Made by a program: the position numbers and the translations under genes. Below the pieces are notes generated by a model that saw only the letters and a program-made list of their open reading frames with translations, was not told where the DNA came from and did no database searches. Shown in pieces: positions 1,089 through 63,880 of a DNA stretch of 64,000 bases. Each line of letters opens with the position of its first letter. Position 1 is the first letter of the stretch. The stretch lies in the sequence record MN871441.1; one strand, written 5' to 3'.

Positions 1089-4000
1089 TATTGTTCTACC
1101 TTAACTTGGGTAGGTGGTACTGGCACAAGGAGTTTACTTACATCACGAGGATTGCCTATATCATCCTTAAGCCGTTTTTCTGACAACCGTTTAAGGTCAG
1201 AATACCTACTACTGAAATCGCTAAACAGGGGACTACCATCAAGCCTACGTGCCGATGGGGTATAAACAACACCGTCAACAGTCCAGTTCTGTTCATCTTG
1301 GTCATAATTCCTGACCTCAAATACATTACCGGTACTTGTATCAATTGCGTTATTCCACTCAGACACATCAAATGGCGTTTGTGGTTGTTCCACTTCCATT
1401 AATTCCCCAGTTATCGGGTCGAATAGAGGTACTGGATCTGTAAACGAACCATTGGGGTCTGGTACTGTTCTATATTTAGGGGTTAGGCTAGGTAAACCAG
1501 AATCCCACCGATATGATTTATTTATATCGACGATAGTCTCTATGTGTTTCATAGAAATACCCCCGTTAACCATAACAGTTAGTAGAGTAATACCAACAAA
1601 TCCAAATCCAACTGGATGAACAAACCGAATAACATCATCCTTATACCGAGATGTGTTCAATTCAGAACGAATTCTCATCATATAGTAAGATCTGTTTCTG
1701 TTTATATAATCTATGTCGGAATATGCTAGCTCTTTACCCTTAACTCCCCGAGTGACTTCACCAACAAAAGAACTAGATTCAGATTTTATTTCTTGCCCAA
1801 CTTCCAACTTCCCAATAAGGTTATGAATCGTTATTTTCCATCTTAATTGACCATCAACAAACTGACGTTCAATATAGGTAACGTTGGCTCGACCAGTTTT
1901 GGTAAATATCGTTCTTCCAACAAGATCAGTACTGATATTAGACGACTTAACCAGTATATCATAATCTATCCCAACTTGAGATTCGATTTCAATATCTACA
2001 TCGGCATCATATAGCAGTTTGAACAAGAACTTATAACTATCCAGAGTTCCCTTTGAGCTATAAAAGTTATTGGCGTTGGCTTCGAAGAATTTAACAACCT
2101 CATCTCTCTTGTTTTGGTCTAGATATATATTCCGTCGTCTCATCTCAGACCACAAAAATACAAAAGAATCTTTCTCTCTCGGGTATTTTAGTTTGATGAA
2201 ATTGAGAAGTTTACCATACATCGAATCAGTACCTTCTGATAGGAATTGAAGATAATATTCAGCAAACTTAGAGTAATTTGAGTCGTTGAAATAATGTTCA
2301 GGTCCCATAATTCTCAACATAGGTGCGATATTTGGATCAATTATACCTGTATCATCCTTCTTCTCTTCAACAACTTCTCTTTCTTGGTTTATCAAAGAAG
2401 CTTGCAACGCGATATATTCTGGTCTCCAAAATACAGATGCTTCATCCCTAACACGATAAGGGAACTCATAGTATCCAAATATCTCCCCACCAAGACCATT
2501 CTCTCTATTGTAGGCAGTGTGAATCAAAATACCGTTACAATACTTACTAAAGTTTTTGAAATTGATATTGTTCAGATAAAATTTTACAGAACCTTTATTC
2601 CAAACTTCTTTGTTATATTCCCGTGTAGGGTCTATGTTATATTGGTATTTGGTGGAAGGTGTTATAAGAACTATTCGGTTTTCATGGTTTTTCCAAACCC
2701 TCTCCCCAGTCATAGCCATATAATCAAACCCAGCCTCGTTATAATATCTAGCTGGTCTTAAGGAGAAAACATCACCATCTTCGGTTTCCCATTGATAAAT
2801 GAAAACTTTCTTTTCACTAAGATATCCAAAATCGGAATTGTATTTTACCGCATAGGTCACATCATCCGGGTATTTATTAACGGTATCAAGATCTTCGATA
2901 GTATTTGTGTATTTATAAGTTGCACCGGATACAAATAATTTAGTACCATCAACACTCATATCGGAATATTTGTGTTCGATATTATACCGTTCATCCTCAG
3001 TATTTCCAAACACTCTTTCCCATGACCCACCATCCGGAACAGAAGGCTTTACTATCTGCCCATCTTCTTGGTAAAGGTCAAAAATATTAGGATATGCAAA
3101 ATCATCAACAAACCGACTATATTTCACCGGGTCTACTATCTTTTGTACTGGATCGGAATAGATATCAGCAATAAACTCAAACGAGTCATGGCTATCACTT
3201 GGTACAAAGTTGACTTTCATTTGCATTCCATGGGTTCTACCTTGGAATACTCTAGATTCCCATCTAGTAGAAACTTTACCAACGTGTGTACCGTCAGGAA
3301 GGAAAGTTACCATCTCACGACCAACGTCAATACCATTTACAAAATTAATATCTTCTGTTGGGTCGGAGAAATTCATATTTCCCAACATGAAATCTTCTTT
3401 CTTGTATTTTTCGTTGAGGCGATATACACCAGAATATACAGATTTCTTTACGTTTTTCGGATCTCTTTTATCTTTCCCTGCATCTACTTCACCGGATACC
3501 AGCGCATAACAAACCTCGTTAAGTACATCCATTTTCTTAACTACTACGTTTGGATTATCACAGATCGTAAAGACTTCCGGGTCCCATATGATATTACCTT
3601 CATTATCGGTTGGACCACCAGATACTCGTATACGTCTAGCAACACCATTTGCAGCGGCATATAGCCACATATTAGAGGACGTTTGAGCTTCTACTTTTCT
3701 TCTGATATCGTCTGGGTACTTGGCAAAAGTCCCAAAGAACATAGTAGGAAATGGGATAGACGAATCAGTATCCATCTTAACAAATGTAAGCTGATCATCC
3801 GACCAAAAATGAAGGTCTGAGCTAAATCTTACTTCATCAACATTTCGTCCGTAAAAAGCAAAATCATAACCAAGAAGGAAAGATGTATTCCTGTTTTGGC
3901 TCATTACGGTATTACCGGTTGGATATCCAACGCGATCAGAAATAGCTTGGTAGTAATACCAGTTCTGCCCACCGTCATTAGTTACCTTACAGTAGTTTTG

Positions 4001-4593: not shown

Positions 4594-6800
<2,207 letters not shown>

Positions 6801-15103: not shown

Positions 15104-16103
15104 ATGATATTCGAAATAACGGAACGTGCAGAGTCCACAACAGAAAAACGCAATAGAAAACAATGGATTGATGTTGGTGTTGATTATATGAACGCCAAGA
15201 AAAAGAACCCAAGTCTTACTGCAAAGAAATATGCAGAGGAAAAAGGGTTGAATTATGAAACATTCAGTAGAGCTATGCGCAGACACAGAGAAGAAATAAA
15301 GACTTATTATTCTCTGATAAACCCAAACAAGAATAAACAACAATGGATTGAGCTTGGTGTTGATTATTTGACACAAAAAGAAAAGAGTAGCATTACTCTA
15401 AAAAATTATATTGAAGGACGTGGACTTAATAAAGAAACCACGGAGCGGGCATTCAGAAGATTCAAGCAAGATATTCTACTGGCTAAGAAGTTAAAAGATG
15501 CGCAAGTAAGCGGAAGAAAACTATCTAAAGCCGAAAAATATCAGATGTTGTTGGCTGACTTTAGAAATAAAGTAAGACAACACGAAAAAGAGCCTGTAAA
15601 GTCTCAGAAGAAGTCGAACGGAATGGTTTAACAATTTCATAAAGAAAAACGTTCGTGGTCACCAAGTAACAAGACCAATTGCTGGTCGATTGTATACTTT
15701 CGCATATGACGCAAAACATAAGGCAACACTACCATACTGGGATAAATTCCCCCTGATCGTATATCTTGGCCTNAGTGCAAANCACAAAGGTTTGATGTTG
15801 GGTCTCAACCTTCACTATATCCCGATCAAAGCCCGTAAAGAATTTATGGAAGAGTTGCTGAAACATGCAACCACAGAGAGGATTACCAACCGTACATCCC
15901 TAAATATCAACTGGGGTAAGGTTAAGGGAATGAGAGGTGCAGACCATATGATCAAAGCGTATTTGCCGGGTCATATTAAGGGTCCATTAATGGAGATTAA
16001 ACCGCAGGATTGGAGTTCTGTCATTAATCTACCGACTCAACGGTTTGTATCTGGTGTTCCTCCGAAGACCTATAATACGAATTCCGTTTGGAGATCATAC
16101 TAA
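15104..16103 (+). CDS. 2: DNA end protector gp2 (apparent +1 frameshift near 15620)
   Basis: [21 protein letters not shown] and LNLHYIP.KAR in the 3' part; the frames join at KS/EWFNNF. Confidence 0.88.
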
Positions 16104-17044
16104 TGAACTTAATACCACCTATTCCAACCATAGATAGTATGATAGATAGTACTATCGGGTTTGGTGAAGATTTATTAAACGATGGTGGGGATGCAAGCGA
16201 GATCCCCGATCTAACTAGGTTTATGCGGAAAGTTGAGAATACCGATTTGGCTAGACCAAACATGTTTATTGTAAGGTTCGGAGATTTCCGAACCTCTATA
16301 TTCAGTGATGGTGTTTTTGATAGGGATTTACCNATATTTCCNGANTCAAGNAGCGGGATGGACGTCAATGATAGTCTTTTCTCTGGTACAAGTTATGCTT
16401 GGCATAGAGTTCAGGACATTGCTTTGGGACAAGCACACAAAATCCTCACGCCTAGCATGAAGAAGATTTTTGGTGCTTGGGACCCGTCCTTGATCCGGAT
16501 CATACCGGGAGCAGGAGAGATCCTTGATGGATTTTTGGGAACTGATTACGATGTAAACAGAGATCTAGCATTAATGGTAAAGAGTGTCGGTCTTCCTAGT
16601 TCTACTTTGGAAACGACAATCAACCGTACAGACAAACTACCTAGACACGAAGTTAGAGGTAGAAACTACGGAACCATGAGTATGACGTTTTACTGTTCCC
16701 CTTCTTACGAGGAACGTTCTTTGATGCTAACATGGCAGAATACAATTGTCAACCCAAGAAATGGACAATTTGGATTTTATAATACGTATGCAAAGGATAT
16801 TGACGTCATCACGTTAGACCGTCATGGAGTTAAGCAATCCACTGTACATAATACAGGGTGCTTTCCCATAGAGGTAGGTGAAGTTCAACTAGATTTTGAG
16901 AACAATTCTCAGGTAGCAACCTTTACCGTCACATTCGCTGTATCAACCACAGTGCATGTTCCTACTAAGGGTGAAGAGAACACCATCGACTCTATAGAGA
17001 GTATCATAAGACGTACTACAGGCGTTGTGAAAGCCATTCGTTAA
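16103..17044 (+). CDS. 54: Baseplate tail-tube initiator gp54
   Basis: DLARPNMF and LMVKSVGLP...L motifs; gp19-like C-terminus. Confidence 0.88.
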   Translation: MNLIPPIPTIDSMIDSTIGFGEDLLNDGGDASEIPDLTRFMRKVENTDLARPNMFIVRFGDFRTSIFSDGVFDRDLXIFXXSXSGMDVNDSLFSGTSYAWHRVQDIALGQAHKILTPSMKKIFGAWDPSLIRIIPGAGEILDGFLGTDYDVNRDLALMVKSVGLPSSTLETTINRTDKLPRHEVRGRNYGTMSMTFYCSPSYEERSLMLTWQNTIVNPRNGQFGFYNTYAKDIDVITLDRHGVKQSTVHNTGCFPIEVGEVQLDFENNSQVATFTVTFAVSTTVHVPTKGEENTIDSIESIIRRTTGVVKAIR

Positions 17045-17048
17045 TACT

Positions 17049-17073
17049 AAGCCATCCTACGGGGTGGCTTTTT
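17049..17073 (+). terminator. Intrinsic terminator after gene 54
   Basis: AAGCCATCC-tac-GGGGTGGCTT followed by a T run. Confidence 0.75.
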
Positions 17074-17088
17074 CATATCTACAGATCT

Positions 17089-17184
17089 CGAACGTAGTGA
17101 GACGGCGTAGCCGCCTGTTCGCTTCGCTCACCTTTCTAATTATAGATTTTCTATATAAATACTTATAGAGACTTTATAGTTTGA
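17089..17184. repeat. Bipartite GC-hairpin plus 50-bp palindrome element, copy 1
   Basis: Shared with 47331-47424; 21-nt arms around TAAATACT. Confidence 0.85.
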
Positions 17185-17273
17185 TTGCAAGTGAAACTAT
17201 CTAAGATTAAGTCTTGAAGAACATCATGTTACAATGTACTAAATAAGTATAGATCTATAAGGGATTTTTAACT

Positions 17274-18059
17274 ATGACAAACAAAACCACGATTGACAAG
17301 AGTGTACTTCTTGCTGCTATGCAGAAAAACGTACAGCAGACCAATGTGACTTTATCAGATGGTAGAAAGATCAAGGTTCGTGCTTTCTTGATGAAAGAAA
17401 TGAAACTGTTGATGTTAGCTAATGAAGCCAATACTGGAATCGATGATGCAATCATCCAAATCGTAAAAAACTGTATCCTAACTGATAATGTTGATGTAGA
17501 CCTTTTACCTGTGTTTGACTTGGAAGCAGTTTATCTAGCTTTGTATAAGTTATCAAAAGCAAGTCCAACTGTCCCGGTTATGTTTACTTGTGCCAACGAA
17601 ATTCTCGATGAAGATGGTAATGTTCAATATGACCAATATGGTGAAATTATTCGTTGTGGCTCTGATATCAAAGTAAACGTAAACTTGAATAACGCTAAAT
17701 TGTCGGATGCACCAGATAACAAAATTGTTCTGAATGAGAACATGACAGTTTATATGAGATATCCTAATATCAGCGAGGTTGAATATTTCAACGTAGAAGT
17801 TGAGTCCGACTTGTTTAACTTAATCAATCGCTGTATTGACGAAGTTCATATGGGAGATCAGGTTGTTAAGGTTGGTGTTGATATTCCGTATGAGGATATT
17901 TCTGAAATTATGGAATACGCCGATTCAGTTGCTTTGACAAAAATGGGTAAATTTGTAACATCCCTCCCCCAACATACTCTAAATATACCTGTAAAGTGTA
18001 AAAAATGTGGACACCAAGAAATTGTTACACTTAAAGGGGTAGAAAGTTTTTTCGCATAA
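17274..18059 (+). CDS. 26: Baseplate hub assembly chaperone gp26
   Basis: KVRAFLMKEMKLL, MRYPN and C-terminal CKKCGH....LKGVESFF. Confidence 0.9.
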   Translation: MTNKTTIDKSVLLAAMQKNVQQTNVTLSDGRKIKVRAFLMKEMKLLMLANEANTGIDDAIIQIVKNCILTDNVDVDLLPVFDLEAVYLALYKLSKASPTVPVMFTCANEILDEDGNVQYDQYGEIIRCGSDIKVNVNLNNAKLSDAPDNKIVLNENMTVYMRYPNISEVEYFNVEVESDLFNLINRCIDEVHMGDQVVKVGVDIPYEDISEIMEYADSVALTKMGKFVTSLPQHTLNIPVKCKKCGHQEIVTLKGVESFFA

Positions 18060-18223
18060 CGCTTGTTAACCATACCATATACGATCATTTTAATACGGTA
18101 TATAAGCTTAGAAAAGATGGATGGAGCCATTCGGACCTTGAGGATATGACCCCCTTTGAATTTGGTGTTTATGTTCACCTCTACCTAAACGATCTTAAAG
18201 AACAGGCGAGAGAAAAGGACTAA
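18047..18223 (+). CDS. 51: gp51-type C-terminal domain without its own start codon (probable -1 frameshift extension of gp26)
   Basis: -1 frame reads FFRITLVNHTIYDHFNTVYKLRKDGWSHSDLEDMTPFEFGVYVHLYLNDLKEQAREKD*; resembles the short gp51 family. Confidence 0.75.
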   Translation, partial: FFRITLVNHTIYDHFNTVYKLRKDGWSHSDLEDMTPFEFGVYVHLYLNDLKEQAREKD

Positions 18224-20094
18224 GTGATGATTGACAAGCAGAAACAGAACGAACTTGATAAATCGGTTCGAGATGTCACGGATGCTATGGATATTGTTTC
18301 TGATTCGATGCTTAAGTTGGACGACAAGACAGAAAAGTTGTCCAACTCAACAAAAGACCTTACCGCGTCTTATGATATTACATCTGATTCCAGTCTGGAA
18401 GTCGCACAAGAACAAGAAAAATTAGCGAACCAGATAAAAGGTGCCAGAAAGGATAATAAGCGTAGTAATAAGGTTGAAAACGAATTAGTTTCAGCTAGAC
18501 GAAAGCAACTGGAAGACATTTTAAATAATAAACAACCCCTAGTGGATTATAGCCAAGGTGTAAAAAGTCAGAACCCAGAACAGGGGGAAACTGCCAAACC
18601 TATGCAGGAGGACACTAGGGAGACTTTGAAAGAATTTATACAACGCGAAGTTGGTGATCGTCGTGAATTTGTGGAAAATTTCAAAGAAGAAAATCAAAAA
18701 ACTGGTAAATTTGTTCGAGAGATAGCAAAAAAAGCTAATATAGTTGACCGAATGAAGAAATCAGAAACATCAGCAACAGCGAAAATACTTGGTCATACTA
18801 TGTCCGCTGGTATCGGTATGGTTACTGGAACCATAAACGATTTGTTATCAACTATTCCCGGTTATAATCAGGCCGCTAATGCAACGAAGTTTGTTGGTGG
18901 GTCTATTATCGATGCACATAACGCACGTAAGGAAAAGAAATTAGATGCAAAAGCGAATGCGGCTTATGAAGAGAAGAAGGCTGATGCTACTTCTAGATTC
19001 CAAGCAGATCCCACAAAACAAACCNGAAGACAAAGTAAAAACAGATAGAAATAACCAAGANCAAAAGAAAGAAAGACAAGAAAATGGAAGAGAACGAGAG
19101 AACAACGAAAAGCGTCATAAAAGCTTAATCGATGTTCTTAAAGGTATCCAGATGTCCATGTTGATCGGTAAACTTGATTGGTGGTGTTGGNTTTGTTCTT
19201 AGTGGNCTTGTTTCTGGTATCAGTGTTCTATCTGGTGCGGTTCTTGGTTTGGCNCCTATGATTGCGGGTGCCCTATCTGCTGCTGTTGGTGGTTTAATTG
19301 CTAAGTTTTCGGGGTTGTTTGATAAGATACCGGGATTGGGAAGTAAGACCCCTACACCATCGTCTGGCTCTGGTGGTGTTAATCCAAACGATGTGTCTAA
19401 GGATCCTAAGAAGTCTCCGAAAACTACACAACCGGATGGAAAGAAGCCACCTACACCAGAACCAAGACCGGGGCAACCAGCAAAAATTGAGACACCTAAA
19501 ACAAAGACACCTACCCCTAAAGGGAAGGCTGGTATTTTGTCAAGGGCTGCTGATCTTGGTAAAAAGGGTTGGTCTGTTGCTACCGATGCTGCAAAATCAG
19601 CCTCAAAATTTATACCAAAAAGCGCATTAACTGGTGCTGGTATGGCGGTACGTGTCGCCGGTAGAGCAATTCCTTTTGTTGGTGCTGGCTTGATGGCTTA
19701 TGAGTTGTATAACTTCGCCAAAGAGAATCCAGATCTGTTGGATAAGGGTGTTGATGCTGCGAAGGGTGCTTGGGAAAGTCTTACCGGGTCATTGTTTGGA
19801 AAAGCTAATGCTAGTGAAGCTCAACCGGAATCTAAATTAGGGAATGAAATTAAGGCGGGTGAAAATGAGCCTGTATTTAAAACCCTTGAGAAAAGAAACC
19901 AAGAGGTTGAAGAATTCCGAGCTAAACAACAACGTGAAAAGGAAGAACGAGATGCACGACGTCAAGAAGGTGCGTTAATGGCTGCTGTAAATAATACCAC
20001 ATATAATAGTATGAATTCCGTTCTACCGTCTGGTTTTGGTGAATTTAGACCAGACCAACCACAATATTCATATGGGGTTCAACCGTCAACATGA
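18224..20094 (+). CDS. 29: Tape measure / hub protein gp29-like (frameshifts at Ns near 19030-19190)
   Basis: About 620 aa, helical, Lys/Pro-rich, with GRAIPFVGAGL glycine-zipper segments; lies after 26/51. Confidence 0.65.
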
Positions 20095-20654
20095 TACATA
20101 ATCAAGCACACATAACAAACATGCGTCTGGAAATCCCAGACGCAAACACAACCGCCAACTTTGTAACATCAGCTCAATCTGTTGTTCTTCCAACTATGGA
20201 AATGGATATAACAAGGGTTTCGATAAATCAGATGACGTCCGGACTTATGCCGGGTTCGAAGATCATTTACGAACCATTTAGGATTAGATTTTTGATTGAT
20301 GAAAATTTCGAATCTTATAAAGAGTTGTATCAATGGATGATCTCTGTTACTGATAGTAGAACTTTCAATTCCACCGCCCATCTACCGGGTGCTAGACCTA
20401 GATCTATTTTGGTTCATATTCTGGATAACTCAAAAAAGAATATAGTATTGACTTTCAAGTTTCATGACCCATTCCCGAGTTCATTGGACGATATAGAATT
20501 GTCCTATGTTGATGACGGAAACCCAGCCCTTATAGGTAATGTAACATTTAGTTACTCATCTATGAGTGTTGTTGGTGTAAACGATTTGGAAATCCTACCA
20601 AAACAAAACCCGGTCGGTATCGGTGCAGGACACCCATTCCAAAGTAAAATCTAA
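20091..20654 (+). CDS. 3: Tail completion / sheath stabilizer gp3
   Basis: PGSKIIYEPF...FLIDENFESYKELYQWM and ILDNSKK...F.F..PFP..L motifs. Confidence 0.92.
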   Translation: MIHNQAHITNMRLEIPDANTTANFVTSAQSVVLPTMEMDITRVSINQMTSGLMPGSKIIYEPFRIRFLIDENFESYKELYQWMISVTDSRTFNSTAHLPGARPRSILVHILDNSKKNIVLTFKFHDPFPSSLDDIELSYVDDGNPALIGNVTFSYSSMSVVGVNDLEILPKQNPVGIGAGHPFQSKI

Positions 20655-20700
20655 AGGTTCTTCGTCTTGAGGTATAATAAACAAAAAGATGAGGTACTAT

Positions 20701-21432
20701 ATGATATACGCTATTTCTGGTTTGAAACGGACGGGTAAAGACACAGCCTCGAAGTTCATCCAAGAACTTACTGGGGCTGTTCCATATGCTTTAGCTCACC
20801 CAATTAAAAAATCCATCCATAATGGATTACAACGTATTCAGAAAACAAAAGATATCAGCTTTGCTGATGTTAATGGAGAAACTGAATATGACCGAGAGCA
20901 AGATTTGGGCTTGACTACTTTAGAATTAAAGAGTCTTCTGAATAATGCTATAATGTTCTGCCATAGACACAACAATTTCACATTCGGTGAAATGCATACC
21001 CTTTTTAATTCCGTCTCCGAATTTAGGTCCAGTGACAAAATGACCATAAAGGATATGCTATGTGTTGGTTTTGCTGAATTCTTTGGTAATAAGAAAAAAG
21101 CAGCAGAAATCGAAAATAAATATAAATGGTCTATTCGTAGACTGATGCAAGTTCTTGGTACGGATCTAGTTGTCAATGTAAGACGTGATTATTGGTTAGA
21201 GTGTATCCCGGATGATGGGAAAGACATCATTATAACCGATGTAAGACAGGCTCACGAAATGCAATTTTGTCGTGATAATGGTGCTAAAGTAATCTTTATT
21301 TGTAAGACTGGAATCGTATCAACCGATTCACATATCACCGAGCGTGGTTTAGAACCATCAGCAAGTGATATTATAGTTTTTAATGATGGTACATTAGAAG
21401 CTCTTAAGAAAAATATCAAATCAATTGTTTAA
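20701..21432 (+). CDS. 1: dNMP kinase gp1
   Basis: SGLKRTGKDT P-loop; RRLMQVLGTD; IITDVR..HE. Confidence 0.95.
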   Translation: MIYAISGLKRTGKDTASKFIQELTGAVPYALAHPIKKSIHNGLQRIQKTKDISFADVNGETEYDREQDLGLTTLELKSLLNNAIMFCHRHNNFTFGEMHTLFNSVSEFRSSDKMTIKDMLCVGFAEFFGNKKKAAEIENKYKWSIRRLMQVLGTDLVVNVRRDYWLECIPDDGKDIIITDVRQAHEMQFCRDNGAKVIFICKTGIVSTDSHITERGLEPSASDIIVFNDGTLEALKKNIKSIV

Positions 21433-21445
21433 TAGGAAAAATAAA

Positions 21446-21670
21446 ATGCAAGAACAAATTCAAAAACTGTCTAGTGACATCATCGTACTGAAAGCCCGTA
21501 TTTTTGATATGAGTGAAGAATCAGTAGCAATTAGTCAACAAAATGCTAAAATCTTTAGTATGCTTGCGGAAGCACTCGAACTAGACAAAGAAGAATCTTC
21601 TGACATTCAGTTCTATCTGAATAAAATCAATCACCTGAAACAAAATCAGGTTGAAGTTGTAAAAGAATAA
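21446..21670 (+). CDS. 57A: Tail fibre chaperone gp57A
   Basis: IIVLKARIFD motif; directly after gene 1. Confidence 0.85.
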   Translation: MQEQIQKLSSDIIVLKARIFDMSEESVAISQQNAKIFSMLAEALELDKEESSDIQFYLNKINHLKQNQVEVVKE

Positions 21671-21677
21671 TGTTATA

Positions 21678-21703
21678 AAGGGGTTGCTTAATAGCAACCC
21701 CTT
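21678..21703 (+). terminator. Intrinsic terminator
   Basis: AAGGGGTTGCT-taat-AGCAACCCCTT hairpin. Confidence 0.8.
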
Positions 21704-21724
21704 TATTTTATGGAAGATATTCAA

Positions 21725-21865
21725 ATGGATGACTACTTTGATTTTGATCTAGAACGGATGCGAATCGCAGTTGAAGGAGATACAATCTATAAACCAGAAG
21801 GTATGACCGTGCGGGAGTGGTTGGATTGGTTAAAAACAGTTGACAACGAAAACAAAGAGATGTAA
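21725..21865 (+). CDS. Small hypothetical protein (46 aa)
   Basis: MDDYFDFDLERMRIAVEG...; GGAAG RBS. Confidence 0.6.
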   Translation: MDDYFDFDLERMRIAVEGDTIYKPEGMTVREWLDWLKTVDNENKEM

Positions 21866-21909
21866 CCTATAGTTGTTGCCTAAATACTGTTTTATAAAGG
21901 AATGATTTT

Positions 21910-22923
21910 ATGTCTAAGATGTTTAATGAGCTGTTTGAATCTATGACTCAAGCAGTCGCGATGAAGGCTCTTGGTTTGACTGGTAAGTTTACTGATGACC
22001 AACTAAAGGCTGCATATCGCAAGGCAGCAAAGGATAACCACCCAGACCGTGGTGGTTCCACCGAAAAAATGCAGGCAGTAAACCAAGCTTACGAAGAACT
22101 GAAAAAATCCGGTTCTCCTGCAACCCAAGAAGCTACATGGGCACAGAGAAAACAGAAACAGGAAGAAGAGAAACACGTTGTAACTAACTTCGTGACCCAT
22201 ATGTTTGACAAGTTTTTTGATACTCAGGCTTATCTCGACTACTTCCAAAAGATGAGCGGTAAAAAGTTCACATTTGAACGTAAAATTACCGTTGGTACTT
22301 GGGGAACTTCTTCTGTCGATTATAAATTTACGTCGGAAGACCGTACAGTTTTCTTTGATCTGAATGCAATGGCTCATGTGTTTATCACCAAAGCTCTGGG
22401 TGCAGGTATTGATAAACCTGAGTTGGATAAGATGGGTGTTTTCACTGAGGTTCTGATTGACCGTAAAAAAGTAAAAATGACCCAAAGCAATTACAACCAA
22501 TCCGAAACTGAAAAGTTTATGAAGGATCCGAAAATCCTTTTCCCAGAAACCAAGCTAAAGAAAGCTTTTTCTGGTGATAAAAAGGTTAAACCGCTCAAGA
22601 AAGCCGATTATGTTCTTTTCGTCAAAAAAGAACTTGAAGGAAAACATTTGGGCGGTGATGATTTCGCAGTTGACATTGGTAACGGTTCCGTGATTTATTT
22701 TTCTCGTATGACATGGATGCGAAAGGGTGTATGGAATATCAGTGGTCGTACAGGAACAAAAGAACGTTGGTCTGTAACTACTCCGTTCTATGAAACTGAA
22801 ACACCGGAAAACATGGATGTGATGAAAGAACTTGTACAGACTATGAAATCTCATAGTTCTTCTGGTGGTGCTCAGATGGAAGCTCTTGTCAAGAAATTTA
22901 TGTTGAAAGCTAACAAAGTTTAA
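21910..22923 (+). CDS. J-domain (DnaJ-type) protein
   Basis: LKAAYRKAAKDNHPDRGGSTEKMQAVNQAYEEL with the HPD motif; CTAAATA late promoter at 21880. Confidence 0.9.
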   Translation: MSKMFNELFESMTQAVAMKALGLTGKFTDDQLKAAYRKAAKDNHPDRGGSTEKMQAVNQAYEELKKSGSPATQEATWAQRKQKQEEEKHVVTNFVTHMFDKFFDTQAYLDYFQKMSGKKFTFERKITVGTWGTSSVDYKFTSEDRTVFFDLNAMAHVFITKALGAGIDKPELDKMGVFTEVLIDRKKVKMTQSNYNQSETEKFMKDPKILFPETKLKKAFSGDKKVKPLKKADYVLFVKKELEGKHLGGDDFAVDIGNGSVIYFSRMTWMRKGVWNISGRTGTKERWSVTTPFYETETPENMDVMKELVQTMKSHSSSGGAQMEALVKKFMLKANKV

Positions 22924-24651: not shown

Positions 24652-24744
24652 GCGTGAGTGGCGAAGTTGGTTGAAACGCATCGGACTTAAAATCCGATAC
24701 TGCATAATGGCACATCGTGGGTTCGATTCCCACCTCACGTACCA
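24652..24744 (+). tRNA. tRNA-Leu(TAA)
   Basis: Cloverleaf; TCGGA-ctTAAaa-TCCGA; long variable arm; GTTCGATTCC; CCA. Confidence 0.93.
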
Positions 24745-24749
24745 AATAC

Positions 24750-24815
24750 GAGATGATAAACTCAAATTACTTTTGTTGAATGAGCTTTTTGGACGTTATG
24801 TGAGTTTATCATCTC
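24750..24815 (+). ncRNA. Candidate small RNA closed by a 15-bp perfect stem
   Basis: GAGATGATAAACTCA / TGAGTTTATCATCTC. Confidence 0.45.
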
Positions 24816-24840
24816 TCAAATTCAATATGAGATGCTTAAT

Positions 24841-24978
24841 ATGAACGTATACATCAGAAATTACATGTGTGGAGTCCTTTGGGGTAGTATCTTCAACGAA
24901 GAACACTGTAAAGGTAAATGTGTAAAGATTATGCGCGGTAAACATTTGAAGCCTTTCTATCAAAAATCGAGATATTAA
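24841..24978 (+). CDS. Small hypothetical protein (45 aa)
   Basis: MNVYIRNYMCG...KSRY*, abutting the next ORF. Confidence 0.45.
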   Translation: MNVYIRNYMCGVLWGSIFNEEHCKGKCVKIMRGKHLKPFYQKSRY

Positions 24979-24979
24979 A

Positions 24980-25369
24980 ATGAAAGTGAAGCTTGGGGCT
25001 TACAACCTTAATGAAAAAAGTTCTTTGGTTAATACGAACGGATTAAAATTCATTTTGAATGAACAAGTTATAGATGAATTTTCTAAAAAACTACCTGTTC
25101 TAATCAATTTTGGTCAAAAATGTTTTAACATTGATAATGCTAAAGATACTCCGGATCCGGTTGGTATTCTTAATTCCATAGAAACTTACAAGAAAGATAA
25201 TATCATTATTGTTACTGGTGATGTAGAAATAACCAATGACAAAGTATATGATGTTCATGGGTGCCTTCCTTCTTTTTGTGTCCGATCTTTAGCTATTCGT
25301 AACGGTGATACTTACAAAGTTGGAGAAATTATTGCATGGGATATGGAAATATATGAAGGTTTATCATGA
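24980..25369 (+). CDS. Hypothetical protein
   Basis: 129 aa ORF. Confidence 0.7.
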   Translation: MKVKLGAYNLNEKSSLVNTNGLKFILNEQVIDEFSKKLPVLINFGQKCFNIDNAKDTPDPVGILNSIETYKKDNIIIVTGDVEITNDKVYDVHGCLPSFCVRSLAIRNGDTYKVGEIIAWDMEIYEGLS

Positions 25370-25764
25370 ATAAACATGATATTCATCTCATTGGTATTAG
25401 TAAGTTTATCAAGAAAGGTCTTACTGTGGTTCAATCAAGTTTGATCTTCAAACAAACCAGTGAAGAATGGAAAAATATCCATGGTGTTGATGTAGACAAG
25501 ATTTATTGCTATATTAACAACGAGGGAAAGGATATCTACGCAATTGGTAGACTTAGATCCTGTTGCGGACCTTGGTTGAGTGTTAGTTGTCGGTCTCTCC
25601 GTAAAAAAGGTTATATAGCATTTGACTTTAACGATGAAATTGAGATACCATATGGTTCAGGGATGAAAACTGCTTATAGGGTATTGTTTTCTGACACCCC
25701 TAAATACGAGTATGATGAAGAAGCTAGACATCCAGTCGCTTACTTCGAAAAATACTTCAAATAA
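25366..25764 (+). CDS. Hypothetical protein
   Basis: 132 aa, ATGA overlap with the previous ORF. Confidence 0.7.
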   Translation: MNKHDIHLIGISKFIKKGLTVVQSSLIFKQTSEEWKNIHGVDVDKIYCYINNEGKDIYAIGRLRSCCGPWLSVSCRSLRKKGYIAFDFNDEIEIPYGSGMKTAYRVLFSDTPKYEYDEEARHPVAYFEKYFK

Positions 25765-25808
25765 AAGTTAAACATCCTTTCTAACTGTGATATGATGTTT
25801 ATATAAAT
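25760..25808 (+). promoter_or_regulatory. tRNA promoter, 49-bp direct repeat copy 2
   Basis: Near-identical to 24601-24649; directly precedes tRNA-Arg. Confidence 0.8.
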
Positions 25809-25809
25809 T

Positions 25810-25886
25810 GCGCTGTTAGCTCAGTTGGATAGAGCAACGTTCTTCTAAAGCGTGGGTCACTGGTTCGAATCCAGTACGGCGCACCA
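25810..25886 (+). tRNA. tRNA-Arg(TCT)
   Basis: Cloverleaf; anticodon loop ctTCTaa; CCA. Confidence 0.95.
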
Positions 25887-25970
25887 CGGGATGTGGTGAA
25901 ATTGGCAGACACACTAGATTTAGGTTCTAGCGCCATAGGCGTGACGGTTCGAGTCCGTCCATCCCGACCA
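25887..25970 (+). tRNA. tRNA-Leu(TAG)
   Basis: CTAGA-ttTAGgt-TCTAG; variable arm; CCA. Confidence 0.93.
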
Positions 25971-25971
25971 A

Positions 25972-26047
25972 GCGGGTAAGGTGTTTATGGATACATGCAA
26001 GCCTTCCAAGTTTGAGTAGACCGGATCGTTACCGGCTACCCGCTCCA
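25972..26047 (+). tRNA. tRNA-Gly(TCC) with an atypical T arm
   Basis: GCGGGTA/TACCCGC acceptor; ctTCCaa; T loop ATCGTTA; CCA. Confidence 0.85.
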
Positions 26048-26058
26048 AGATTTAAAAT

Positions 26059-26128
26059 TGATGTGTTACAGCTATCAGCTCACCGTTGAAAGAATACGGA
26101 TAAGTCGGCTCGACTAAAGAACATATCA
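26059..26128 (+). ncRNA. Candidate ~70-nt structured RNA
   Basis: Terminal stem TGATGTGTT/AACATATCA enclosing hairpins CCGT/ACGG and AGTCG/CGACT. Confidence 0.5.
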
Positions 26129-26131
26129 TTT

Positions 26132-26208
26132 GGCCCCTTAGCTCAGTTGGTTAGAGCAACCGACTCATAATCGGTTGGTCACTGGTTCGAGTCCAGTAGG
26201 GGCCACCA
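26132..26208 (+). tRNA. tRNA-Ile2(CAT) (lysidine type), possibly Met
   Basis: GGCCCCT acceptor and overall sequence resemble enterobacterial ileX; ctCATaa; CCA. Confidence 0.88.
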
Positions 26209-26230
26209 AATTTTTGATGAGAGCTATATT

Positions 26231-26425
26231 ATGTCTGGTATAAAATCCATAATTGAAAATTGGTCAGTTGGTGATGGTATAATCCATTGGAAGAATGGAC
26301 GCCATAGTTTAGTAGTCTTTGGGTTTGCTCCAAATGGAGAACCTGCCTTTAAGTTTAAAGGTAAGAGTAAACTTACATCAGTAAGACAGATCGAAAAATC
26401 CATAGTTAATGCATATATTCTATAG
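26231..26425 (+). CDS. Hypothetical protein
   Basis: 64 aa, GAGAG RBS. Confidence 0.6.
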   Translation: MSGIKSIIENWSVGDGIIHWKNGRHSLVVFGFAPNGEPAFKFKGKSKLTSVRQIEKSIVNAYIL

Positions 26426-26434
26426 TTGTAAGCT

Positions 26435-26582
26435 CTCACGAATTTAATGGTCGTTGACCTTACGATAATAATGAAGCGATACAGAGTCCCATCGCTTCTA
26501 AAAATATCAAAAGGGATGTTGATGCGCGTATGTAGCCGGGTTATAATGACCAAGATTCATGAAGGGTGAAAGACCACCCTAA
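26435..26582 (+). ncRNA. Candidate ~150-nt multibranch RNA
   Basis: GAAGCGAT/ATCGCTTC and AGGGTG/CACCCT hairpins; long-range TGGTCGTT/AATGACCA. Confidence 0.5.
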
Positions 26583-26589
26583 ATATCAT

Positions 26590-26667
26590 AGCGGGGTGGA
26601 GAAGTCAGGAGTTCTCGCCAGACTCATTATCTGGAAATCGGTGGTTCAAATCCACCTCCCGCTTCCA
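26590..26667 (+). tRNA. tRNA-Met(CAT), initiator-like 5' end
   Basis: AGCGGGGTGGAG start; CCAGA-ctCATta-TCTGG; CCA. Confidence 0.88.
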
Positions 26668-26668
26668 A

Positions 26669-26744
26669 TGGCGTGTAGTTCAGTAGGTAGAACAGCGGAC
26701 TGTTAATCCGTATGTCGTGGGTTCGAATCCCACCTCGCCAGCCA
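26669..26744 (+). tRNA. tRNA-Asn(GTT)
   Basis: GCGGA-ctGTTaa-TCCGT; CCA. Confidence 0.94.
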
Positions 26745-26750
26745 AATTCT

Positions 26751-26841
26751 GGATGTTCGGCTACGATGGCGGTGTAGCGGCGGACTGTAAATCCGTTCCC
26801 TCTGGGTAAACAAGTTGGTTCGAATCCAACAGCATCCACCA
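26751..26841 (+). tRNA. tRNA-Tyr(GTA)
   Basis: GCGGA-ctGTAaa-TCCGT; variable arm; CCA. Confidence 0.92.
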
Positions 26842-26844
26842 AAT

Positions 26845-26990
26845 AGAAGAAGTTAGAAGACGTTCTGATAAAATCCTCGGAGACGATGCCCCCTTGCGGT
26901 TTTAAACCGTTACGGATAAGCACGGGGTAATCCAAATCAACCATTATAGGGATGTGGTCATCTGGTATGTAAAATACAGTTGGTTTGGAA
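26845..26990 (+). ncRNA. Candidate stable RNA between tRNA-Tyr and tRNA-Pro
   Basis: No ORF; CGGT-tttaa-ACCG hairpin; CCAAATCAAC/GTTGGTTTGG stem; internal AACCA at 26939-26943. Confidence 0.4.
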
Positions 26991-26995
26991 CTTTT

Positions 26996-27071
26996 CGGTG
27001 ATTAGCGCAGTTGGTAGCGCGTCTGGTTTGGGACCAGAGGGTCACAGGTTCGAGTCCTGTATCACCGACCA
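26996..27071 (+). tRNA. tRNA-Pro(TGG)
   Basis: TCTGG-ttTGGga-CCAGA; CCA. Confidence 0.95.
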
Positions 27072-27349
27072 CTTAGCACAAAGAACGGGTAACGACGTAT
27101 GCCCCGGAATAAGCCAGCCATAGAGAATCTGGATATCCTGAAACGTGCCTTTAGGTTTCAGGCGGGATTGGTAGTATAAAGACGATATGGTAACTACTCC
27201 TTGACAAGCAGGGTTGAACTTGAGGTAACTGTCCTTTACCAAACAACGAACAGATGGACAAAATCAGTTGAACGTCCTTCCTCCTTGTGATAGCATGTCA
27301 ACTACATTAGGATATAATCACAGTCTAACGATCCTGATTATAATCCGCT
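27072..27349 (+). ncRNA. Candidate ~280-nt structured RNA
   Basis: CCTGAAAC/GTTTCAGG and TATAATCA/TGATTATA hairpins; long-range GCGGGATT/AATCCGC and TTGACA/TGTCAA. Confidence 0.55.
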
Positions 27350-27425
27350 GCCGAATTAGCTCATCTGGTAGAGCACAGCCTTTGTAACGCTGGGGTGGTC
27401 CGTTCGAGTCGGACATTCGGCACCA
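27350..27425 (+). tRNA. tRNA-Thr(TGT)
   Basis: Cloverleaf; ttTGTaa; CCA. Confidence 0.93.
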
Positions 27426-37836: not shown

Positions 37837-38160
37837 TTATTTAGGTAACAAAAAAGTCCCNTANTNNGGGACTTTTTGACATTGTGGNTCTTTCAGATCC
37901 TTTCTATAAGAACATAACATTCTATTTTGNGAATCTATATAAACACCTATNTTTTCNANCCAAGCNCTATANCTTAAACTNTCCTCATATGTCATNCCNA
38001 CATAAGTNGTTTCACCTTCCTTNATNACAGTCCATTTAGGAATATANGTTTTTACAGGNNTNGGTCTATTTGGATGNAACACTAATACCGGNTCTGGTNT
38101 CGGTGGNGTTGAACANGCAGCNANAACCACTATACACATCATAATTAGAATTTTTTTCAT
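37837..38160 (-). CDS. o-spanin lipoprotein (Rz1/pseT.2-like)
   Basis: Signal peptide with lipobox Cys, Pro-rich; ends MLCSYRKDL...QC. Confidence 0.8.
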   Translation of the reverse strand: MKKILIMMCIVVXAXCSXPPXPXPVLVXHPNRXXPVKXYIPKWTXXKEGEXTYXXMTYEXSLXYXAWXEXIGVYIDXQNRMLCSYRKDLKXPQCQKVXXXGTFLLPK

Positions 38161-62520: not shown

Positions 62521-63880
62521 TCANANGGATAGAAACGNNNCNTTNNNNAATACNNNTTGNNNNACTANNNANTTTTNTANCTCATCNNTNNNTTNNTAAC
62601 NAAGATTTTCNATTTNNGTACCAATNCCAGATNCANNCTNGTNNNGNTAGAGCTNAATNTNNACCANATATNNTTNNCNANNANANCAAATCTTNANTNT
62701 GNNNNTNATACAANTCNNANTCTGNNCNTGNATANCCATCGTNACNAANNNATNNTTTNNTGANACGACTAGTANTCCGTTCCCNNCGTGCTNGTTNNNC
62801 TNCGNTGCGTAATNCTNNNTTNCGNNCTNCNNANNTTNATNCCTCNTNNANAGGAAATTCATAACTNNNCAANNNNNNNCTCCANANCAATCTNNTNTNG
62901 TNGANNTNNATNNNNNNNGATATCNTTCNNCNTTANANNANNNNTNANTGNNNNNGNNNNANNNNNNNNNNNCNNNNNNNNNATNNNCNNNGTNNNNNNN
63001 ANNNNNNTTNNNGNNNACANNNNNNNCNCNNNTTNNNNNNTNNNCGNTNNNANNNNNNANTGCGGTCTCCAAAGATTCACCCTNTTNNNNNNNANANNNA
63101 NNNNNNNNTNNNNANNNNNNNTTNNNTTCNNGNNNNNNNNNNCANNTNNNNNNNTCNNNNNNTNNNNNNNNNNNNTNANNNATNNANNNANANNNNNNNT
63201 NNGNNNATNNNTCTNNGNNNNNNNATNNNNNANNNCNNNNNNNNNNNNNNNNNTNTCNNNANNNNNANNNNTCNNNNNNTTNGTNNCCNNNNTTNNNGGN
63301 TNNANNNNNANNANCNANNNNANNNTNNNCNTNTACANNNNNAAANNNANNACCNNNNTNNNNNTNANAGANNTCNNNANCNNNNNNNNNNNNNNNNTNN
63401 ANNNNGNNTTCANNNNNNTTNNGNNTTNGNNNNANNANNNNNNNANNNNTNNNTNNNTNNNNNNNNNNNNNNNNTNNTNNNNNNNNTTNNNTNNNAGTNN
63501 TCNTNNNNNNNNNNTTNTNNNNNTNCNNNNNNANNNTNANNNACTNNNGNNATNNCNNNNNCTNNNNNNNNNNNTNTNNNNNGNNNNNNNNNNNNNNNNN
63601 NGNCNNNTNNNNNNNCNNNNTNANNNNNNNNANNGNNNNNNANNNNNGNNGNNNNTNNNNNNGNTNGGATGNNNNNNNNNGNNGNANNNANNNANNNNTN
63701 NNTNCNANCTNCNNNNNNAANCANNNNANCNNNNTNNNCNTCANANNNNNCNNNANNNNNANCNNNNNNANNANANANNTNNNANNNNGTTTGATTGCGG
63801 ATTTGTTCCAGAAGGTCAATATGGATACTTGCATTGTCTTTCGATTTAAATTCTTCGTAAACTTCTTTGATAGTCTTCAT
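62521..63880 (-). CDS. Unresolved coding region (mostly Ns)
   Basis: AAGGA RBS and start MKTIKEVYEEFK at 63880; the rest is unreadable. Confidence 0.4.

Follow-up and report, generated by a model that had tools for sequence, protein, structure and literature searches.

A candidate -1 frameshift site at the end of gene 26 of T4-type phages and its relation to T4 gp51

Background

The tail assembly chaperones G and GT of phage lambda reportedly arise through a frameshift that is said to be conserved among long-tailed phages, in accounts attributed to Levin, Hendrix and Casjens (1993) and to Xu, Hendrix and Duda (2004). The contractile-tail phage P2 uses the slip site TTTTTTG for its E/E+E' pair, and the -1 signal of Escherichia coli dnaX consists of a heptamer, an upstream Shine-Dalgarno (SD)-like element and a downstream stem-loop. 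The tail-chaperone frameshift of long-tailed phages has been reviewed, and the accessible parts of that 2016 recoding review (PMC5009743) and of reviews on T4 mention none for T4-type phages. Here we describe a candidate -1 frameshift site at the end of gene 26 in a stretch of 64,000 nucleotides (nt) from sequence record MN871441.1, hereafter the window, in which the gene for the baseplate-hub assembly protein gp26 is followed in the -1 frame by a short open reading frame (ORF) related to the C-terminal tail of T4 gp51.

T4 gp26 and gp51 have been listed in a review as hub assembly chaperones, with gp51 absent from the virion (PMC3004832). The gp51 of cyanophage and marine vibriophage was noted by Sullivan et al. 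in 2010 to be about 20% of the T4 length, the first ~200 residues lacking, and gp51 was described as 'missing' in Aeh1, with no explanation offered (PMC3037559).

The end of gene 26 and the -1 reading frame

The gp26 of the window (Table 1) belongs to the T4 gp26 family, as the PF12322 profile scores 184.7 bits over residues 25-261 against a curated cut-off of 24.5. The 3' end of the gene reads GAA AGT TTT TTC GCA TAA and contains, in the gp26 phase, the heptamer T_TTT_TTC that the initial annotation had proposed as a slip site, with the SD-like AAGGGG lying upstream as described there. The -1 frame is closed upstream by TAA at 18032-18034 and downstream by TAA at 18221-18223, which is directly followed by GTG ATG at 18224/18227, where the next gene starts. 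Its 56 codons (18053-18220) hold a single ATG/GTG/TTG, an ATG located 23 codons before the end, and the frame thus has no start for the full domain, again as had been claimed. The zero-frame length of 261 amino acids (aa) given initially stood, while the predicted long product was recalculated from ~316 to 259 + 56 = 315 residues.

In-frame T_TTT_TTN occurs about 6 times in the ~17,000 proxy codons of the window, one homopolymer run excluded, and the gp26 heptamer is the sole occurrence with a long -1 ORF behind it. The layout of this slip site is far beyond chance. A further in-frame T_TTT_TTG, four codons before the end of the minus-strand ORF 37837-38160, opens a -1 ORF of only 4 codons and was dismissed as a candidate for recoding. 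The T run there sits behind a GC-rich stem and resembles an intrinsic terminator.

The identification of the -1 ORF as the gp51 C-terminal tail was upheld by a match to phrog_634, 'baseplate hub assembly catalyst' (gp51), at E 2e-12 over profile positions 55-112 of 121, and a weak match was also found to the C-terminal end of the gp26/gp51 profile phrog_150. The tail was present by tblastn in 38 phage records, fifteen of them at 100% amino-acid identity, with identities of 80-82% in phage 65-type sequences, 44-54% in phiAS5, Aeh1 and PX29, and 31-40% in a cyanophage and a Citrobacter phage. Forty-four base differences separate the window from phage 65 in this ORF, 31 of which fall on third codon positions of the -1 frame, and the ratio of synonymous to non-synonymous differences is 27:17 in the tail frame and 5:38 and 3:40 in the other two. 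The gp51-family match and this third-position bias indicate that the tail ORF genuinely encodes protein, with purifying selection confined to the -1 frame.

The full-length tail was not found as a predicted protein in a word-based search of 5.8 billion proteins, and an exhaustive phmmer search of 1.84 billion representative proteins returned no in-frame long form. The nine weak phmmer matches obtained with the tail were short truncated ORFs (26-74 aa) or unrelated long proteins. The tail is modelled as a helical hairpin with a predicted local distance difference test (pLDDT) score of 82, and a fold search with this model gave nothing meaningful and no informative structural neighbours.

Conservation of the slip site among relatives

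A set of 94 gp26 genes of the non-T-even type was assembled from 14 isolates and from 80 metagenomic contig loci in IMG/VR, the latter found by a scan seeded with an N-terminal gp26 motif and sharing 26-34% identity with the window protein. They come from phages of Aeromonas, Vibrio, Citrobacter, Pseudomonas, Xanthomonas and Ralstonia, from cyanophages and from the metagenomic contigs. Single-linkage clustering at 50% identity divides the 94 sequences into 38 groups, and the median pairwise identity among them is 35%. Statistics on the heptamer, the stop and start codons were taken over the first 90 loci, and those on the SD-like element over 92 sites.

In all 94 loci the gp26 stop is preceded at 0-3 codons by an in-frame T_TTT_TTN and a gp51-like tail lies in the -1 frame, and the tail domain starts at the T-run in that frame in each of the 80 IMG/VR loci. 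The same gp26 end is present in phage 65, phiAS5, Aeh1, PX29, Ahp1, Citrobacter phage Ci1, the Vibrio phages PG216 and ValKK3, the Synechococcus phages S-H38 and S-SSM5, Pseudomonas phage pf16, Xanthomonas phage X1 and Ralstonia phage RSP15, where it follows the pattern NNT TTT TTY, 0-1 codon, stop, and where the tail begins at the T-run in the -1 frame. Conservation of TTTTTT(C/T) in the gp26 frame, suggested initially as a check, was thereby seen, the heptamer being TTTTTTC in 47, TTTTTTT in 29 and TTTTTTA in 14 of the 90 loci. The zero-frame stop lies 0-1 codon past the heptamer in 87/90. The codon before the T-run always ends in T (37% in the background) and the first Phe codon is always TTT (70% in the background), while the zero-frame residue that follows Phe-Phe is highly variable, with 14 different residues. 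The overlap with the stop codon in part dictates the aliphatic residue at the second -1 codon, which was not counted as independent evidence.

The split between the two frames could in principle be an artefact in which a sequencing indel divides one ORF, or the tail could be the decaying remnant of a gene. The window is of draft quality: 2,533 bases are ambiguous, one poly(A) run is 46 nt long and the next gene carries two single-base indels. The junction is nevertheless identical in phage CC2, the same two-frame layout occurs in the 94 independent sequences, the tail is under purifying selection and no in-frame version exists among close relatives. These comparative data refute an artefact or relic, to which we give almost no credence, and speak against the indel that would fuse the ORFs or restore an ATG, named initially as a ground for abandoning the proposal.

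Relation to T4 gp26 and gp51

Profile comparisons connect both parts of the locus to T4. The window-type gp26 aligns end to end with T4 gp26 at E 6e-22 (hhalign, ten-member alignment A1) and reaches only E 9e-5 against the N-terminal domain of T4 gp51; by these alignments the zero-frame product is the T4 gp26 orthologue. Profiles were required for the link to gp51, as direct BLASTP against T4 gp51 gave nothing with either the window gp26 (E 0.14) or the tail (E 3.5). The two T4 proteins share 20% identity with each other (E 1e-5).

The initial annotation had described T4 gp51 as a gp26-like fold with a C-terminal tail, and this description was confirmed. PF12322 covers T4 gp51 residues 1-201 (E 8e-55) and phrog_634 covers residues 147-246, while a profile built from the -1 tails of ten phages aligns from its position 1-2 to gp51 residue 200/201 onward (T4 200-249), with scores of E 1e-6 for T4 gp51 and E 7e-8 for Mineola gp51. 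The same tail profile has no match in T4 or Mineola gp26. Since the PF12322 domain and the tail, aligned from the start of its profile, follow one another in gp51, the gp51 proteins of T4, Mineola and EcS1 match the predicted long product in colinear order through the junction, which answers the alignment that had been suggested as a check. Both gp51 modules are thus present and adjacent in the window in different frames, and would form one polypeptide only if the shift occurs.

The gp26 of the Tevenvirinae T4, Mineola and EcS1 keeps the same Gly-Leu-Lys-Glu-Phe-Phe ending, with Phe-Phe encoded by TTC TTT, which is not slippery. The protein ends 2-3 residues later and is followed by gene 25, with no tail ORF. 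Their gp51 (249-252 aa) comes from a divergently transcribed gene, with genes 27, 28 and 29 behind it. T4 also makes the C-terminal half of gp26 separately as gp26' (positions 3591-3878 of the T4 locus).

Because the window gp26 is much closer to T4 gp26 than to the gp51 N-terminal domain, the data fit T4 gp51 as a diverged gp26 paralogue with its tail fixed in frame. The initial suggestion that the T4 26/51 pair is a duplicated and fixed G/GT agrees with such a paralogue; the direction of change, with the frameshift arrangement as the ancestral one, is something that we infer, the frameshift form being more widely distributed.

Signals around the slip site

In E. coli, the heptamers U_UU.U_UU.C and U_UU.U_UU.U rank among the motifs that promote -1 shifts efficiently, and insertion sequence elements make use of them, according to a 2014 heptamer survey (PMC4066793). 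An SD-like element was sought by pairing the 16 nt that lie 5-20 nt upstream of the heptamer with the 3' end of 16S rRNA at a cut-off of -4 kcal/mol or better. The duplex in the window amounts to -8.0 kcal/mol, a value reached by 1.1% of background windows, and the cut-off was passed by 85% of the 92 related sites and by 13.5% of in-gene background windows. This signal is partly due to a conserved Glu/Lys/Arg-Gly motif. The Glu codon within the element is GAG rather than GAA in a ratio of 35:22, against 483:1548 in the rest of the genes (Fisher p 3e-9), and since GAG is favoured over GAA beyond the amino-acid constraint, this preference points to selection on the RNA itself.

Proposed mechanism and alternative routes to the tail

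The fusion of gp26 to the tail is very likely to be made by slippage of some kind, whether ribosomal or transcriptional, and a -1 ribosomal frameshift of the G/GT kind is the probable route. The shift on the ribosome, its efficiency and the roles of the two products we infer as follows. Most ribosomes would stop at the zero-frame stop codon (18057-18059) and release the 261-residue gp26, while a minority would shift by one base in the 5' direction on T_TTT_TTC (18047-18053), where the two tRNA-Phe would pair anew with UUU, and would then decode the -1 frame through 18053-18220. The resulting product of ~315 residues would comprise gp26 through the second Phe and a helical tail of 56 residues, and would be the counterpart of T4 gp51. 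The slip would probably be aided by the SD-like element 7-10 nt upstream, as in dnaX, and by the stop one codon downstream. If lambda G/GT and P2 E/E+E' are a guide, the two products may act in a fixed ratio as assembly chaperones for the complex of hub and tape measure.

The same fusion protein, indistinguishable from a frameshift product, would result from ordinary translation if RNA polymerase added one U at the T-run in some of the mRNAs. The slip site is a homopolymer, and UUUUUUU is avoided in all three frames of E. coli genes, possibly due to polymerase slippage, according to the heptamer survey (PMC4066793). The T-run has exactly six T at 58/90 sites, the window included. Six T is short for efficient polymerase slippage. 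The SD-like element at a dnaX-type distance, with its enrichment at the codon level, and the zero-frame stop held within 0-1 codon of the site are sensible only for a ribosomal event, and we consider polymerase slippage an unlikely source of the fusion.

Alternatively, the tail could be made as a free protein of ~55 residues from a non-canonical start or by re-initiation past the gp26 stop. A short gp51 is annotated in this way in cyanophages, phiAS5 and PX29, and several records contain a small coding sequence (CDS) named 'baseplate hub assembly catalyst'. A canonical start is absent in the window and in 61/90 relatives, in which no ATG, GTG or TTG could start the full tail, the codon at the annotated start position varies between ATA, TTA, CTG and TTG, and a -1-frame stop abuts the T-run in 14/90 loci. 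A free tail would leave unexplained the absolute conservation of the in-phase T-run and of the preceding T as well as the avoidance of a T-run in the tail-less gp26 genes of T-even phages. Furthermore, the tail occurs in T4-type phages only fused to a gp26-like domain, and homology to T4 gp51 begins at the Phe codons, upstream of the zero-frame stop. A free tail as the general product is therefore improbable, slightly more so than polymerase slippage, although a minority of lineages may translate the tail independently, as Vibrio phage D493 evidently does.

Several observations speak against a ribosomal frameshift. Some start codon lies near the junction in 29/90 loci, often an ATG from TAATG, so that the expectation of a missing start codon across relatives held for 61/90 and failed for the remainder. 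D493, of which one locus was examined, has clearly switched to an independent start: its gp26 end has no T-run and the ATG of the tail overlaps the gp26 stop, which suggests that a free tail may be functional and that this phage produces the tail as a separate small protein. Homologues with independent starts and no conserved slip site had been named initially as refuting evidence, and D493 is the only one of this kind among the genes examined, while the 94/94 loci of the frameshift type keep the site. T-runs of 7 (17 loci), 8 (12 loci) and 9 (3 loci), together 32/90, would also favour slippage by RNA polymerase. Phe-Phe and Gly are also kept for protein reasons, in T4 gp26 included, so the amino acids themselves account for some of the T-run and some of the SD-likeness. 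Finally, conserved downstream RNA structure was looked for among the relatives and not found; the hairpin of the window (-10.7 kcal/mol) is no better than shuffles (z -0.67), and downstream structure is lacking in phage 65, moderate in the phiAS5/Aeh1 group and strong in PG216 and pf16.

Structure of gp26

Among models in BFVD, the AlphaFold model of gp26 (pLDDT 85.8) is similar to others labelled 'baseplate hub', which extend as far as those of Campylobacter, Bacillus and jumbo phages. A Foldseek search of the PDB with this model gave no matches at E <= 0.001, and the best meaningful fold matches were local, weak and not significant, namely the HK97 tail assembly chaperone 2ob9 (E 0.62, Foldseek probability 0.77, template modelling score of 0.50 on the target) and, at E 2.9, YqbN (3klu). 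A sequence search of the PDB with the gp26 profile returned only chance caspase matches (E > 0.06), which were discarded. The model has two halves with a similar strand-strand-helix order. An internal duplication was considered and set aside, the comparison of the N and C halves being not significant (hhalign E 0.1).

The downstream gene and the surrounding region

The long gene that follows the tail (Table 1) was called the tape measure in the initial annotation and is probably that, on the grounds of its position, size, composition and central hydrophobic segments. It encodes 595-741 aa in all lineages, starts at or overlaps the tail stop and is followed by gp3, and its central hydrophobic segments are as in T4 gp29. 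The support from T4 that this identification might have had was not obtained, since hhalign with ten of the long proteins detected no homology to T4 gp29, and PDB and NCBIfam searches gave only a sub-threshold match to a structural maintenance of chromosomes (SMC) coiled coil. The long gene of Xanthomonas phage X1 has peptidase/endolysin-family matches and the S-SSM5 copy is annotated as an endolysin; such domains are common in tape measures. The window copy is broken by two single-base frameshifting indels, seen as two 1-nt gaps in pairwise alignments with CC2 and AS-yj, in which the gene is a single CDS of 1860-1866 nt. The indels are probably assembly errors, the simplest explanation given the draft state of the window sequence.

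Over positions 16000-22000 the window shares 99.8% identity with Aeromonas phage AsSzw2 and 95-99% with Ceceduovirus genomes (Straboviridae, ~230 kb), among them CC2, AS-yj and AS-zj. The local order in annotated relatives is gp2, gp54, gp26, an unannotated gap of ~165 nt, a hypothetical protein of ~620 aa, gp3 and deoxynucleoside monophosphate (dNMP) kinase. The order gp54 - gp26 - tail - long gene - gp3 is kept across relatives, with different neighbours in RSP15 and D493, where the pair has no long tape-measure-like gene behind it. As a single TATAAATA is present between 16000 and 20700, the sequence suggests a common late transcript for gp26, the tail ORF, the long gene and gp3.

Table 1 Features of the gene 26 region, in window coordinates unless another locus is named
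Feature	Position	Strand	Remarks
gp54-like tail-tube initiator	16088..17044	+	phrog_45 E 1e-46; gp54 label in CC2; upstream neighbour of gp26
T4-late-promoter-like TATAAATA	17154..17161	+	upstream of gp26; sole TATAAATA within 16000-20700
gp26, baseplate-hub assembly protein, zero-frame product of 261 aa	17274..18059	+	PF12322 E 2.5e-54; phrog_150 E 7e-59
SD-like AAGGGG, candidate 5' stimulator	18034..18039	+	7 nt ahead of the heptamer
Slippery heptamer T_TTT_TTC	18047..18053	+	gp26 frame, X_XXY_YYZ phase
-1-frame tail ORF, 56 codons + stop	18053..18223	+	equivalent of the T4 gp51 C-terminal tail; frame open from 18035
gp26 zero-frame stop	18057..18059	+	one codon past the heptamer
Downstream long gene, probable tail tape measure	18224..20094	+	phrog_11300, function unknown
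gp3-like tail completion / sheath stabilizer	20091..20654	+	so annotated in CC2 and AS-yj; PF06841 and phrog_45 matches
D493 tail region (locus L097)	3148-3348		gp26 end without T-run; tail ATG overlaps gp26 stop (TAATG)

The whole window contains its 2,533 non-ACGT bases in 1,152 short stretches, the first at 4672 and the last at 63785-63788, which are dense at ~4-6 kb, 12-16 kb, 36-46 kb and 62-64 kb and absent from 17100-18500. Several ORF calls are shortened by them, and gp48 and gp2, for example, appear shorter than their CC2 counterparts. The unbroken 46-nt poly(A) at 6157-6202 yields a spurious poly-Phe in a minus-strand ORF and has the look of an artefact of sequencing or assembly. A cluster of 10 tRNA genes (24652-27425) comprises Leu-taa, Arg-tct, Leu-tag, Gly-tcc, two Met-cat, Asn, Tyr, Pro and Thr, without a tRNA-Phe.

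Annotation of the tail in public records and implications

A joined gp26-tail CDS was present in none of 20 annotated records examined. The naming of the tail varies by record between gp51, 'hypothetical protein' and no call. A GenBank note in Vibrio phage PG216 points out a stretch resembling ~40 C-terminal residues of T4 gp51. The gp26 CDS of PG216 (positions 2477-3322 of its locus) is labelled 'baseplate hub assembly catalyst', the annotation of two neighbouring features having apparently been merged. The initial annotation knew of no description of this frameshift for T4-like phages, and none was found for gp26/gp51 in the searchable literature, an earlier remark in the KVP40 or T4 genome papers being possible. 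The available portions of the 2014 heptamer survey (PMC4066793) and of a 2025 frameshifting preprint likewise contain none.

We think it likely that, throughout the T4 superfamily outside the T-even phages, a -1 programmed frameshift at the end of gene 26 is the sole source of gp51, that gp26/gp51 is the missing G/GT-type pair of T4-type contractile tails and that the two genes of T4 are a derived, hard-wired copy. If so, the groups covered would include marine cyanomyoviruses, vibriophages, Aeromonas phages, pf16-like phages and others, and the 'short gp51' of cyanophages and the 'missing gp51' of Aeh1, both on record since 2010 (PMC3037559), would be explained. A very large and ecologically dominant group, the marine cyanomyoviruses, would join the users of programmed frameshifting. 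The short and long forms of one chaperone would provide a testable model for the assembly of the hub and the tape measure, and the locus would illustrate how, in nature, recoding and gene duplication can each lead to the same pair of proteins. The annotation would need correction in at least several hundred public genomes, in which gp51 is a truncated mini-ORF or was missed; tblastn with the tail of one vibriophage alone returned 511 records.

Comparison with described systems

Like E. coli dnaX, the locus combines a homopolymeric heptamer with an internal SD-like stimulator ~10 nt upstream. Unlike dnaX, it has no conserved 3' hairpin, so the full dnaX-type signal is not present, and the shifted product is the longer one, whereas that of dnaX is the shorter one.

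The likeness to lambda G/GT lies in the two overlapping ORFs, the second of which lacks a start, in the -1 heptamer within the last codons of the first ORF, and in the position of the pair between a tube-type gene (gp54) and a long gene in the tape-measure slot. The T4 counterparts gp26 and gp51 are moreover assembly chaperones, gp51 being absent from the virion (PMC3004832). In contrast to lambda G, gp26 (PF12322, ~250 aa, four conserved Cys) shows no sequence relationship to it, the T4 proteins are assigned to hub assembly rather than tube assembly, and the frameshift described here is predicted from sequence. The G/GT-type label given initially is thus apt for the overlap, the missing start and the in-phase heptamer, and does not extend to homology between gp26 and lambda G, with the HK97 fold match being weak.

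With P2 E/E+E' the locus shares a contractile tail, a T6-type heptamer, an extension of ~50 residues and a position upstream of the tape-measure gene, here a probable one, and a Leu codon occupies the A site in 14/90 relatives (T_TTT_TTA) as in P2. The protein family is unrelated to that of P2, and C or T dominates the last position of the heptamer here. T4 itself differs from the window phage in using two divergently transcribed genes without recoding, and in a gp51 whose N-terminal domain has diverged.

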